From: Rebecca billardiae RCC1528
Lineage: Eukaryota > Protista > Haptophyta
NCBI GenBank assembly: GCA_965240325.2
Contig: OZ251247.1
Span: 682,001-746,000, forward strand
Length of the DNA stretch: 64,000 bases
Direction: 5' to 3'
Both the position numbers and the translations under genes were made by a program. Shown here piece after piece: positions 3 through 64,000 of this stretch; the first letter of the stretch is position 1, and every line of letters starts with the position of its first letter. A model generated the notes under the pieces. It had not been told where the DNA came from and ran no database searches. It was given only the letters and a program-made list of their open reading frames with translations.

Positions 3-767
3 GGCTGTGCGTACAGCTGGGGCTACAACAGGGACGGCCAGCTCGGCCACGGCGACAGGAAGCACCGGTGGGAGCCGACGCGCATCGAGGCGCTCGACGG
101 CGTGCGCGTGGGCGGCGTTGCAACTGGGGATGGACACACGCTACTGCTCTCGGCGCAAGGCGCGGTCTACTCGTGCGGCTGGGGCTACAAGGGCCGTCTC
201 GGCCACGGCGACGAGCAGGAGCAGCACACGCCGAGGCGCATCGAGGCGCTCGCGGGCGTGCGCGCCGTGCACGTGAGCGCGGGCGAAGCGCACAGCCTGG
301 TGGTGGACGCGGAGGGCGGCGTGTGCTCGTTCGGCTTTGGCCGCAACGGCGAGCTTGGGCACGGCGACGACCTTGACCAGGAGATGCCCACGCCCATCGA
401 GGCGCTGGCGGGTGTGCGCGCCGTGCGCGCGTGTGCAGGCCATTGCAGCAGCGCGGTGCTGGGCGCGGACGGCAGCGTGCACACGTTCGGCGACAACAGT
501 ACTGGGCAGCTCGGCCGGACATCGTCCCACCCGGTGGTCAACGCGCAGCCCGCGCGGCTGCACGCCCTCTCACACGCGTGCGTGCTGGGGTGCTCGCTCA
601 GCAACTCCCACGCGCTGTACGCCACAGCGGACGGCGGTGCGTACGCGTGTGGGCGGAAGGTGGCCGCGCTCGGCCTCGGCGTGAACGACCTGGTCGACCC
701 GCAAGCAAAGCAGCGGACGCCGCAGCGCGTGGCGCAGCTGCCGCCCCTTGCAGGCACGCTCCGCTGA
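3..767 (+). CDS. F-box/RCC1-repeat family protein, copy 1 (3' part; 5' end outside window)
   Basis: Open frame from nt 3 (GCAYSWGYNRDGQLGHGD...) to TGA 765-767; RCC1 repeats; C-terminus QRVAQLPPLAGTLR matches paralogs 4 and 5. Confidence 0.9.
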   Translation, partial: GCAYSWGYNRDGQLGHGDRKHRWEPTRIEALDGVRVGGVATGDGHTLLLSAQGAVYSCGWGYKGRLGHGDEQEQHTPRRIEALAGVRAVHVSAGEAHSLVVDAEGGVCSFGFGRNGELGHGDDLDQEMPTPIEALAGVRAVRACAGHCSSAVLGADGSVHTFGDNSTGQLGRTSSHPVVNAQPARLHALSHACVLGCSLSNSHALYATADGGAYACGRKVAALGLGVNDLVDPQAKQRTPQRVAQLPPLAGTLR

Positions 768-1043
768 GCACGCGTACGCGGGTGCAGCAGGATGCACACC
801 GCCATGATGAGCAGCCTGAGCCCCCTGAGTGCAGTGCCACACACTCCCCTAGCTGCTGCTTCTCTCCAACCCCCTGCTCAGCACTACAGTACGTAAGCTA
901 CAGTCTTCCGGTCGTAGTACAGTAGGCGTAAGTACGTACACTACGGTGGTACCGCGGGTATCCTTAGGTCGAGCAGTGCGCACGCTTACTCAATGATGTG
1001 CGACCAACCGCCAGCGCGCAGCACCCTCCGGCTCGGAGCGGAG

Positions 1044-2400
1044 ATGGCACCAGCAGCATCGGCGACGACGCGCACGCGTGCCGCGGCGCCCCCGGGTGTG
1101 CGGCGGCTGACCGACCTGCCGCCCGAGCTCGTCTCGCGCATCCTCTCTCATCTGGATTGCGCGTGTGACCTCGCCGCCGCCAACGCCGCCTCGCGCCTCT
1201 TTCGCGGCGCGCCGCTCGAGCACGCGCTGCGCGAGCGGGCGCGCACGCGCGGCCACGCCCGCGCTGCCTGAGACGCTGCCCGCGGGCGCGCGCACGTGGA
1301 CGGAGGAGCTGCTCGCCCGTGAACGCGTGTACGAGCTTGCATGCGAGCACGGGCAGGTCGTGGTCGCTGCTGGCACCGATGATCACCCGTTCAGCGCGTT
1401 TGTGGACGCGGACGGCGGCGTGCACACCTGTGGCGAGCCGCCGGGCCAAGTCGAACTCTCACGGCGGGAACGCAAGGCCTTGGCCGGGGGAGTATTCGCT
1501 TTAATGCGACACGCAGCCTGCTCGCCGCATCCGACGCGCGTGGCCTCGCTCAGCGCAGTGCGCGTGCGTTCTGTGGCCGCTGGCTGGGCCCACCTGCTCG
1601 CGCTGAGCGAGGCTGGCGCCGTGTACGCGCGCGGCCACAACGACTACGGCCAGCTGGGGCTGGGTCACCAGGCGGAGGACGCGCATGCGTTCGTGCCACT
1701 GCCTGCGCTGGACGCCGCGCTCGTTGTGGGCATTGCCGCTGGCCCCCTTCACAGCCACGCGCTCACCGCCGCTGGGTGTGCATACAGCTGGGGCAACAAC
1801 TACTGCGGCCAGCTCGGCCACGGCGACAAGGACCGGTGGGAGCCGACGCGCATCGAGGCGCTGCGCGGCGTGCGCGTGGGTGGGATCGCAGCAGGGGTAG
1901 CCCACACGTTGCTTCTCTCGACCAGCGGCGCCGTCTACTCGTGCGGCCGCGGCCAGCACGGCCAGCTCGGCCACGGCGACCAGCAGCAGCGGTATGCGCT
2001 GAGGTGCATTGAGGTGCTGGATGGTGTGTGCGCCGTGCACGTGAGCGCGGGCGGTGCGCACAGCCTGGTGGTGGACGCGGAGGGCGGCGTGTGCTCGTTT
2101 GGCGTTGGGCCTCGCGGCCAGCTCGGGCACGGTGACCATGCCACCCAGCTGGTGCCCAAGCGCATTGCTGCCCTCGCAGGCGTGCGCGCAGTGCGTGCCA
2201 GCCGTGGCCCTGTCTGCAGCGCGGTGCTGGGCGCGGACGGCAGCGTGCACGTGTTCGGGGAGAACCGCGACGGCCAGCTCGTCCGGGCGCCTTTAACCAA
2301 CGCGCAGCCCGCGTGGCTGGACGCTCTGACGCATGGGTGTGTGACGGACTGCTCGCTCAGCAGCTGCCACGCGCTGTACGCCACAGCGGACGGGGCAGTG
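1044..2400 (+). pseudogene. F-box/RCC1 copy 2, frameshifted and split by an insertion
   Basis: ATG 1044 MAPAASATT...LTDLPPELVSRILSHL (F-box). A 2-nt loss in a CGCGCG run near 1260 versus copy 5 shifts the frame (could be an assembly error). RCC1 homology stops after ...HALYATADGAV at 2400. Confidence 0.8.
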
Positions 2401-62359: not shown

Positions 62360-62499
62360 GATGCCGTCCGCGCTCGCTCGGGATGAGCAAGCGTCGGCGA
62401 ACCGTCACCAGCGTGCCGCGCCAAAAAAAACGGCAGACCCTTTGTACCGGGGGAAACGATGACGCAAAACGACCGCGGACCAGTCCCGGCCGCGACGCC

Positions 62500-64000
62500 A
62501 TGACCGACGCCGGGGCTCACAGCGAGAACGCGCGGTGGCTGACTGACCTGCCCGTCGAGATGATCGAGCGGGTGCTCGTCGTTCTGCAGCAGCAAGACCT
62601 CGCCGCCGCCAACGCCGCCTCGCGCCTCTTCCGCGGCGCGCCCGGCGGCCACTCGCCGGTCGAGCACGCGCTGCGCGCTCGCGCGCGCGCGCACGGGCTC
62701 GAGCGCGCCATCCCGACGGCCCTCCCGCCGGGCGTGTGCACGTGGACGGCCGAGCTACTGGCGCTGCTGCGCACGCACGAGCTCGCGCGCGCGCACGCGG
62801 CCGTCGTCGCGTGCTCGCGCGACGCGTGCGGCGAATACGACTGCGCCTTCAGCGCGTTTGTGGACGCGGAGGGCGGGCTGCACACGTGCGGCGAGGAGGA
62901 GGTGCGGGGCGACGACGGGGAGCCGACGGGTGGGATCGCTCCTCCGCCGGCGCTGGGCCTCTTGGACGCACCCGCCGTCGTGGTGCCGACGCGCGTCGCC
63001 TCGCTCTGCGCGGTGCGCGTGCGTGCGGTGGCAGCTGGCTACCACCACCTGCTCGCGCTGAGTGACGCCGGTGCCGTGTACGGCTGCGGCCAAAGTGACA
63101 TAGGCCAGCTCGGGCTGGGTGACAAGACCACGCGTCGGGCATTCGAGCCGATACGTGGCTTGGAGCCCCAGCTGGTCGTGTGCATTGCCGCCGGCTTCAA
63201 GCACAGCCTCGCGCTCACCGCAGCTGGGTGCGCGTACAGCTGGGGCTACAACCACTTTGGCCAGCTCGGTCTCTGCGACAGGGAGGACCGGTGGGAGCCG
63301 GCGCGCATCGAGGCACTGGCCGGCGTGCGCGTGGGTGCGCTGGCAGCGGGGGTCGACCACACGCTGCTGCTGTCCATCGCTGGCGCTGTCTACTCGTGCG
63401 GCTACGGCAAGTGCGGCCAGCTCGGCCACGGCGATGGGCAGCATATGCACACGCCGAGGCGCATCAAGGCGCTCGCTGGCGTGCGCGCCGTGCACGTGTG
63501 CGCGGGTGACACGCACAGCCTGGTGCTCGACAGGGAGGGTGGCGTGCACTCCTTTGGCGGCGGCACCGATGGCTGCCTCGGCCAAGGGGACACTGGCGAT
63601 AGGTTCAAGCCGGCGCGCGTCGAGGCGCTGGCGGGCGTGCGTGCCGTGCGCGCCAGCTGTGGCCCTGTCAGCAGCGCTGTGCTGGGCGTGGACGGCGGCG
63701 TGCACGCGTTCGGGCGCAACGAGCATGGCGCGCTCGGCCTGGGCGGCGCTCCACAAAGCCTTTTGCCCACCCGCGTGCAGGTGGGAGCGGGCGCGCGCGT
63801 GGTGGGCGCTTCACTCGGTGGCGTGCACGCGCTGTACGTCACTGCGGGCGGTGAGGCGCACGTGTGCGGCTGGCGATCTGCTGCGCTCGGCCTCGGCATG
63901 AGCGCGGCGTCGGAGGAGGGCGTGGCTCAGGGCGACAGTGGCATCGACACGAGTACGCCCACACGCGTAGCGCATCTTCAGCTGCGTGACCTGCAGGGCT
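62500..64000 (+). CDS. F-box/RCC1 copy 15 (stop codon beyond the window)
   Basis: ATG 62500 MTDAGAHSENARWLTDLPVEMIERVL; in frame at the window end (TRVAHLQLRDLQG); closest to copy 12. Confidence 0.9.
   Translation, partial: MTDAGAHSENARWLTDLPVEMIERVLVVLQQQDLAAANAASRLFRGAPGGHSPVEHALRARARAHGLERAIPTALPPGVCTWTAELLALLRTHELARAHAAVVACSRDACGEYDCAFSAFVDAEGGLHTCGEEEVRGDDGEPTGGIAPPPALGLLDAPAVVVPTRVASLCAVRVRAVAAGYHHLLALSDAGAVYGCGQSDIGQLGLGDKTTRRAFEPIRGLEPQLVVCIAAGFKHSLALTAAGCAYSWGYNHFGQLGLCDREDRWEPARIEALAGVRVGALAAGVDHTLLLSIAGAVYSCGYGKCGQLGHGDGQHMHTPRRIKALAGVRAVHVCAGDTHSLVLDREGGVHSFGGGTDGCLGQGDTGDRFKPARVEALAGVRAVRASCGPVSSAVLGVDGGVHAFGRNEHGALGLGGAPQSLLPTRVQVGAGARVVGASLGGVHALYVTAGGEAHVCGWRSAALGLGMSAASEEGVAQGDSGIDTSTPTRVAHLQLRDLQG

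Follow-up and report, generated by a model that had tools for sequence, protein, structure and literature searches.

Positions 682,001 to 746,000 of contig OZ251247.1, a 64-kb stretch that we call the window, carry a tandem family of genes whose products join an F-box-like N-terminus to an RCC1-type propeller. The window is 65-79% guanine plus cytosine (GC; about 70% overall), the nearest named clusters of its proteins are most often haptophyte, and the host of the F-box/RCC1 array is probably a haptophyte-like alga. An initial annotation of this DNA had proposed a repertoire of 15 such genes with antibody-like hypervariable positions on a conserved scaffold. Chance would yield at most 0.07 occurrences of any of its three framework DNA motifs, which we counted 33, 15 and 15 times, and a tblastn search with one copy as query recovered 15 paralogs, 12 of them intact-looking, which bears out the proposed repertoire. 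Fifteen copies in 64 kb amount to a lineage-specific tandem expansion.

The copies are single open reading frames (ORFs) of 482-522 codons with no sign of introns. They fall into several groups: c01-c05 on the plus strand at 0-9.4 kb, c06-c09 on the minus strand at 22.3-30.0 kb, c10-c12 on the plus strand at 39.2-48.1 kb, a head-to-head pair (c13 and c14) at 53.9-57.0 kb, and c15 from 62.5 kb up to the window end (Table 1). The three copies that do not look intact are c01, which is cut by the window edge, and c02 and c11, which are broken. The start codons of c13 and c14 (window 53872-57041) are only 188 bp apart, an arrangement that suggests a shared bidirectional promoter. At the junction of c02 with the c03-carrying insert, about 33 nt of the host copy have been lost. 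The detached fragment at 5219-5377 is 94% identical to the 3' end of c04, compared with about 84% between the remainder of c02 and c04.

Table 1. Coordinates of the F-box/RCC1 gene copies and associated features in the window (aa, amino acids; pS, proportion of synonymous sites that differ).
Feature	Position	Strand	Description
c01	3..893	+	C-terminal part, blades 3-7, cut by window start; tblastn 61% identity to c10, alignment
c02	1062..2409	+	Broken; frame change near 1231-1244; homology stops at ~2397; tblastn in two frames, blastn/alignment of the break
Insert within c02	2397..5218	+	~2.8 kb, carries intact c03; homology to c04/c05 stops at 2396 and resumes at 5219
c03	2706..4151	+	Intact, 482 aa; one residue deleted from the blade-2 G-xx-H loop
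Detached 3' end and downstream flank of a c02/c04-like copy	5219..5377	+	94% identical to c04 3' end
c04	6151..7632	+	Intact, 494 aa
c05	7922..9400	+	Intact, 493 aa; nearest relative c04 (framework pS 0.12)
c06	22297..23817	-	Intact, 507 aa
c07	25030..26499	-	Intact, 490 aa
c08	26691..28208	-	Intact, 506 aa
c09	28538..30049	-	ORF intact, 504 aa; blade-4 G-x-G-xx-GQLG motif lacks 4 residues, blade 5 has 4 extra
c10	39159..40658	+	Intact, 500 aa; reference copy for the structure model
F-box-like motif of c10 (aa 17-48)	39207..39302	+	Pfam PF12937; family profile against the Protein Data Bank (PDB)
Seven-bladed RCC1-like propeller of c10 (aa 106-493)	39474..40637	+	AlphaFold2 (AF2) model with DSSP strands; Foldseek match to UVR8, template modelling (TM) score 0.92
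c11	42766..44033	+	Broken; frame change near 43700; stop after blade 6, blade 7 absent; tblastn in two frames, alignment
c12	46544..48109	+	Intact, 522 aa
c13	53872..55386	-	Intact, 505 aa; head-to-head with c14
c14	55575..57041	+	Intact, 489 aa
c15	62500..63999	+	Complete to ~aa 500; frame still open at window end

The encoded proteins match RCC1-type families strongly in Pfam (RCC1, RCC1_2 and WD40_RLD, E 1e-58 to 1e-71), with six stretches matching RCC1 (E 1e-58 to 1e-64) and WD40_RLD scoring about 240 bits where 150 is the cut-off. We modelled c10 with AlphaFold2 from 48 sequences; the model is confident (predicted local distance difference test (pLDDT) 92.7, predicted TM score 0.91) and shows helices at residues 22-30, 34-43, 45-48, 56-67 and 85-102, followed by seven four-stranded blades. 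Its best solved matches in Foldseek are UVR8 (TM 0.92 on the target), the RCC1-like domains (RLDs) of HERC1/2, RPGR and RCC1, with TM scores of 0.86 for the HERC2 RLD and about 0.72-0.77 for RCC1. Pfam, the model and the fold match thus agree on an RLD, with seven RCC1 repeats predicted to form a seven-bladed beta-propeller.

The N-terminal module is matched less strongly. The c10 N-terminus scanned alone matches the F-box-like family PF12937 at 28.4 bits against a cut-off of 24.3, and the same family is matched in 20/23 N-termini at E < 0.1 when environmental relatives are scanned together with the window copies. We compared a profile of the N-termini with PDB sequences and found that 21 of 22 matches are F-box proteins (FBXO22 at 1.5e-4, FBXW7 at 6e-4, AnkB, GID2, FBXO31 and others). 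Modelled alone, the N-terminus reaches a pLDDT of 74 with helices at 22-31, 34-47 and 56-67. The F-box is therefore supported by sequence and is not proven by fold; binding of SKP1 by the motif would be expected. The family has the F-box + RCC1 architecture found in FBXO24, in agreement with what the initial annotation had read from the DNA.

Variation between the copies is concentrated at two kinds of site in each blade: the two residues preceding a conserved histidine (G-xx-H), and the x and xx positions of G-x-(N/G)-xx-G. In the 15-copy alignment these sites hold 6-11 residue types (entropy 2.4-3.4 bits) between invariant neighbours in every blade, and each loop exists in 9-15 distinct versions among 13-15 copies. 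The description of hypervariable loops on a conserved scaffold therefore holds, and the loop residues that the initial annotation had listed match alignment columns 270/271, 340-343 and 428/429. In c10, the variable loop residues are 110-111, 176-177, 193/195/196, 228-229, 245/247/248, 280-281, 297/299/300, 332-333, 349/351/352, 384-385, 401/403/404, 449-450 and 466-467.

In the c10 model, each G-xx-H pair sits between strands 1 and 2 of its own blade, and each G-x-N-xx-G set opens the long connection between strands 3 and 4. Because these two connections of an antiparallel four-strand meander emerge on the same side, all predefined loop residues are predicted to lie on one face of the propeller. 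An alignment to UVR8 made with phmmer places the G-xx-H sites over the G-W-R-H-T motifs (W233/R234, W285/R286 and W337/R338) and the G-x-G-xx sites over W94-G-D96-F97. In UVR8, R286 makes inter-monomer salt bridges with D96 and D107 (PMC5091643), so the variable face appears to be the counterpart of the face with which UVR8 contacts its partner. Strand topology in the pLDDT 92.7 model and the UVR8 alignment thus both agree with the earlier proposal of a single variable face.

The amino acids used at these sites are not those that GC-driven drift would give. Relative to an expectation from the base composition of noncoding DNA in the window, Tyr is enriched 6.6-fold, Asp 3.2-fold, His 2.7-fold and Cys 2.3-fold, with Pro and Leu at 0.3-fold; relative to the remainder of the protein, loop Tyr is enriched 8.6-fold. 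Free drift in this genome would yield codons rich in Gly, Ala, Pro and Arg, and the loop composition therefore argues against neutral drift. Of the initial annotation's claim that the loops are rich in Y/W/F/H/R/D, the enrichment of Y, W, H and D stands; R is not enriched, and C, N and K are enriched in addition.

Outside the loops, conservation is more patchy than the initial annotation implied when it called the framework DNA almost invariant. The 12 full copies share 67-90% identity in DNA (mean 71%) and 55-85% in protein (mean 61%), and a single codon is shared by 90% or more of the copies in only 89/470 codon columns, which form runs of no more than five codons. What survives of that claim is a set of short islands of mostly preferred codons: GGC accounts for 17/18 of the fixed codons for its amino acid, GTG for 16/16, GCG for 10/12 and CGC for 8/9. 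CTC and CTG are fixed at five Leu positions each, and GGG and CGG at single sites. Synonymous diversity is uneven, with pS at 0.10-0.14 in columns 116-131, 335-365 and 396-425 and at 0.45-0.6 elsewhere, and synonymous heterozygosity is higher where neighbouring codons vary more in amino acid (rho 0.39, p 5e-7). In c10 coordinates the low-pS islands lie at about window 39297-39341, 39876-39965 and 40056-40145; they span all 15 old paralogs and alternate at fine scale with saturated codons. Fixation of preferred codons accounts for much, not all, of these islands. Apart from the last ~55 nt of c04 and c05, the DNA upstream of the copies cannot be aligned, which, taken with the uneven synonymous diversity, indicates that the paralogs are old and their silent sites partly constrained. 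These ~55 nt before the two start codons (6096-6150 and 7867-7921) are identical, though the coding framework of the pair differs at 7.8% of bases. Since the upstream regions cannot be aligned they provide no neutral noncoding yardstick, and the 3' flanks are too short and mosaic to serve as one.

We measured divergence by the Nei-Gojobori method, treating as loops 31 codon positions defined beforehand by repeat register. Over all pairs, the proportion of nonsynonymous sites that differ (pN) is 0.62 in the loops, compared with a framework pS of 0.37 and a framework pN of 0.21. In the youngest pair, c04 and c05, framework pS is 0.12 and framework pN 0.054, and loop pN is already 0.35: 18/31 loop codons differ, nine of them by 2-3 bases. 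We then fitted codon site models (a GY94-F3x4 implementation written for this analysis, with a fixed general time-reversible (GTR) tree and one global branch scale). Model M2a, which allows a class of codons with a nonsynonymous to synonymous rate ratio (dN/dS, omega) above 1, improved on M1a from -13717.7 to -13639.0 (likelihood-ratio test (LRT) 157, p 7e-35) and placed 7.4% of codons at omega 6.2. Codons with P(omega>1) > 0.9 comprised 12/31 loop codons and 9/439 others (odds ratio 30, p 1e-10). Seven of the nine sites outside the predefined set lie farther along the strand3-strand4 loops, either past GHGD or within the long loop of blade 6, and one sits beside the blade-1 G-xx-H loop; the sole high-probability site in a hairpin of the opposite face is column 385. 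When the alignment was divided into five segments, each with its own tree, the LRT was significant for blades 1-2 (21.7), 3-4 (57.4) and 5-6 (74.3) and weak for the N-terminus (8.3) and blade 7 (6.6). The young clade of c01, c02, c04 and c05 alone gave an LRT of 41, with omega 14 for 5.8% of codons. In a partition model the scaffold has an omega of 0.25, and is under purifying selection.

Fourfold degenerate sites provided a local control on mutation rate. Over all pairs, such sites within two codons of a loop codon, including those sandwiched between loop codons, differ at 0.33, compared with 0.30 elsewhere. A local mutational hot patch is unlikely because fourfold sites near the loops diverge like those elsewhere. 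In the young clade, the nearby fourfold sites differ at 0.04-0.20 and loop codon positions 1+2 at 0.37-0.50 (Fisher p 2e-4 to 0.06), so that loop codons diverge 2-11 times faster than the fourfold sites of adjacent codons. We also compared the loops with the fastest fourfold sites, those in columns variable in other copies, and found 4/35 differing fourfold sites against 22/44 loop sites for c01/c04, and 8/39 against 20/44 for c01/c05. Loop turnover thus exceeds that of synonymous sites in young duplicates. Inside the loop codons of close pairs pN/pS is 0.9-2.4, a range that derives from only 2.5-9.5 silent changes. Diversifying selection best explains the loops, given their fast turnover and their selected, interface-like composition.

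Some loop cassettes are common to otherwise distant copies: AAC-TGC in c07/c13, GAT-GCG in c05/c14, and a further one in c07/c12 at columns 340-343. Exchange between copies probably occurs, since distant copies share these cassettes and the 5219-5377 fragment is closer to c04 than the c02 remainder is. The finding that 41% of site pairs are incompatible points to saturation. Runs of the kind scored by GENECONV are confounded by rate heterogeneity, and we drew no conclusion from them.

Taken together, we estimate with a probability of roughly 65% that the window encodes an expanded family of adaptors, each with an F-box-like motif, a conserved helical linker and an RCC1 propeller, whose loops are under diversifying selection for new binding specificities. 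The window would hold part of a large, tandemly expanded family whose members act as cytoplasmic or nuclear adaptors. By homology, the F-box would dock SKP1 and so recruit a CUL1-type ubiquitin ligase, and one face of the propeller would bind a protein ligand that is then ubiquitinated. Each blade would contribute to this binding face its strand1-strand2 loop (G-xx-H) and its strand3-strand4 loop, the latter through G-x-(N/G)-xx-G and the residues that follow GHGD. After each duplication, selection would diversify binding specificity, as in other conflict-driven or recognition receptor families, and the candidate ligands may be foreign, selfish or endogenous.

Several results weigh against this interpretation. 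When the loop partition is given its own synonymous scale its omega is 1.43, which does not differ significantly from 1 (p 0.14), and with family-wide codon frequencies its omega is 0.67; the silent rate of the loops is not estimable because they are too saturated. Because the framework synonymous sites are themselves constrained, ratios to framework dS overstate omega. The excess over the fastest fourfold sites shrinks to a modest level in c04/c05 (18/69 against 23/62) and disappears in older pairs, which are saturated. The claim of dN/dS > 1 at the loops is accordingly not robust: the M2a test and the turnover above neighbouring fourfold sites speak for it, and the fit with a loop-specific synonymous scale does not. 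A four-gamete recombination statistic resembling the pairwise homoplasy index (PHI) is not significant (p 0.09), and gene conversion is neither excluded nor shown. On the side of the F-box, the whole-protein score of c10 is 23.9 bits, just below the 24.3-bit cut-off, c06 and c08 have no F-box-like match at E < 0.01 in a whole-protein Pfam scan, and the top Foldseek matches of the N-terminal model are Skp1-bound F-box proteins at E >= 0.37, which is not significant.

One alternative is that there is no diversifying selection, the loops being unconstrained surface that evolves near the neutral rate and seems fast because codon-usage selection lowers synonymous change in the scaffold; the family would then be an ordinary lineage-specific expansion. 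The unrejected omega of 1, the preponderance of preferred codons (GGC, GTG, GCG) among the fixed scaffold positions and an excess over the fastest fourfold sites that falls to 1.1-1.6x in several pairs fit this account. Neutral loops would not, however, be expected to have a composition so far from what GC content dictates (Y 6.6x; P and L 0.3x), nor young-clade replacements that outrun fourfold change both in adjacent codons and in columns chosen for being variable (c01/c04 and c01/c05), nor nine of 18 differing c04/c05 loop codons changed at 2-3 bases when the framework differs at 7.8%, and we consider the account improbable. Less probable still is that the variable codons arise by directed mutation, either patch hypermutation or micro-conversion from donors, and not by selection on point mutations. 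The identical cassettes in distant copies, two broken copies that are possible donors and the closeness of the 5219-5377 fragment to c04 would suit such a process, but the fourfold sites adjoining or between variable codons are not more diverged, columns 341 and 394 are nearly invariant, most cassettes are unique and the recombination test is not significant. In the germline pattern silent change is not raised locally around the variable codons, and the 'antibody-like' of the initial annotation carries no implication of somatic diversification.

If selection does act on the loops, its agent may be foreign or domestic. That the propellers form an intracellular immune system, binding viral or other foreign proteins and routing them to the proteasome via a SKP1-CUL1-F-box (SCF) ligase, is by analogy a possibility that we rate below even odds. 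The tandem arrays, fast loop turnover after duplication, Tyr-rich interface and conserved scaffold form a conflict-type signature, a neighbouring ORF resembles haptophyte LRR_6 or 'nlrc3-like' proteins by language-model features only, and positively selected substrate domains of nematode F-box proteins have been tied to antimicrobial immunity in a passage of PMC8120010. Against this, nothing links the family to infection, a pattern scan of IMG/VR found no viral relatives or decoys of the family, the long ORFs nearby have no TIR, HET or NACHT domain by Pfam, and the same signature can result from mating or self-recognition and from selfish-element conflicts. The immune reading is one among several conflict or recognition scenarios that fit the data. 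A more specific version, in which the germline of a haptophyte-type alga holds a library of F-box/RCC1 propellers, probably more than 100, whose Tyr-rich, one-face loops are selected to capture and ubiquitinate proteins of giant viruses or intracellular parasites, seems to us somewhat more doubtful again. The targets could instead be own or conspecific proteins, if the family comprises sub-functionalised regulatory SCF adaptors, toxin-antidote or drive elements, or a set for mating or self/non-self recognition comparable to the S-locus F-box brothers. The architecture and selection pattern fit equally well here, the insertion of a paralog-carrying 2.8 kb segment into another copy indicates that the units are mobile, and F-box genes have a known role in hybrid incompatibility (PMC11573670). 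The window showed no toxin gene, partner locus or mating-type linkage, though, and regulatory adaptors for conserved host substrates usually keep their binding faces conserved; we regard own or conspecific targets as unlikely.

Beside the c06-c09 array, an ORF at 29592-31580 on the plus strand matches His_Phos_2 (histidine phosphatase; E 8e-10, aa 254-400), and its 5' part, which overlaps c09 on the opposite strand, is probably noncoding. An ORF at 59804-62359 on the minus strand encodes 851 aa from an ATG start and has no Pfam match; the clusters closest to it by language-model features are haptophyte LRR_6 or 'nlrc3-like' (scores 0.85-0.91), which we treat as a lead only. A Pfam scan of the long ORFs between the arrays gave nothing beyond the histidine phosphatase. 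The intervals 9400-22300 and 30300-39100 are 75-79% GC, and many long ORFs overlap there in several frames, such as the one at 35168-38890 (1240 aa), none with a Pfam match; in DNA so rich in GC, a long ORF does not by itself point to a gene. An origin of the array as a giant-virus insert was considered and found no support.

We searched for relatives of the family in sequence collections and in the literature. The c10 protein has no exact match on record, and the best outside protein, 52% identical, was found on a Logan contig of 70% GC that carries one copy. The full architecture recurs, at 36-48% identity, in many environmental proteins of 470-550 aa, for some of which an F-box-like match had been precomputed. 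Out of 1.84 billion, a profile of the N-terminal F-box and linker retrieved 158 cluster representatives at the stricter threshold of E <= 1e-10, and 633 at E <= 1e-3. Atlas clusters named 'putative F-box domain-containing protein' that carry RCC1 are most often haptophyte, and one of the clusters nearest to the family is a vertebrate FBXO24 cluster (score 0.94). Homologues with BTB (PF00651) or U-box (PF04564) in place of the F-box also exist, and the best named protein matches of the family are UVR8-like and algal hypothetical proteins. RCC1 and F-box protein expansions have been noted separately in Symbiodiniaceae (PMC6517890). In our full-text literature searches, no account of a diversifying algal F-box/RCC1 family came up.

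Giant viruses kill marine haptophytes in large numbers, and to our knowledge almost nothing has been established about their intracellular recognition systems. A diversifying family of RCC1-propeller ubiquitin-ligase adaptors would be a concrete candidate for such recognition, or alternatively for a part in mating or selfish-element conflict. It would also show that the face of an RCC1 propeller, with about 30-40 variable positions, is an evolvable binding scaffold. Were the germline library directed at viruses or parasites real, it would constitute a ubiquitin-based innate immune receptor system built on a beta-propeller, a kind of system not described in the literature searched.

Among proteins of known function, vertebrate FBXO24 has the same two-domain F-box + RCC1 architecture. 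It is, as far as we know, a single-copy gene not reported as diversifying, and the linker module of the algal family has relatives of its own, mostly unnamed environmental proteins. UVR8 and the RLDs of HERC1/2 and RPGR share the fold (TM 0.81-0.92), and the variable loops of the algal family correspond to the partner-binding or dimer face of UVR8. In the algal family, however, the chromophore tryptophans of the GWRHT motifs are replaced by hypervariable residues. We therefore rejected a UVR8-like photoreceptor: the columns of W233, W285 and W337 each hold 8-10 residue types, and the family is not a UV-B sensor. Unlike HERC1/2, the algal proteins lack a HECT domain, and unlike RCC1, the Ran guanine-nucleotide exchange factor, they carry an F-box module instead of the RCC1 tail; with RCC1 we saw only similarity of fold. 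BTB-RCC1 (RCBTB-like) and protist U-box-RCC1 proteins are also ubiquitin-ligase adaptors in which an RCC1 propeller presumably binds the substrate, and differ in the module that docks the ligase.

Plant nucleotide-binding leucine-rich repeat receptors (NLRs), in their leucine-rich repeats, the B30.2 loops of TRIM5 and the S-locus F-box brothers all cluster recognition residues on one surface of a conserved scaffold and diversify them by duplication and selection. Their likeness to the algal family is by analogy only, since folds and signalling outputs differ. Closer parallels are the expanded F-box families of Caenorhabditis (FTH/FBA) and plants, in which positive selection acts on the substrate-binding domains and the F-box is constrained, as a passage of PMC8120010 summarises Thomas (2006); the same passage treats their link to immunity as tentative. 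As portrayed there, these families resemble ours in tandem lineage-specific expansion, a retained F-box, fast sites in the substrate-recognition domain and a proposed, largely unproven, role in immunity or conflict. They differ in that the algal recognition module is a seven-bladed RCC1 propeller in which the same two loops vary in every blade, and in that the host is unicellular. Positively selected F-box families and the F-box + RCC1 combination of FBXO24 are thus both already known, and the algal family would combine the two.

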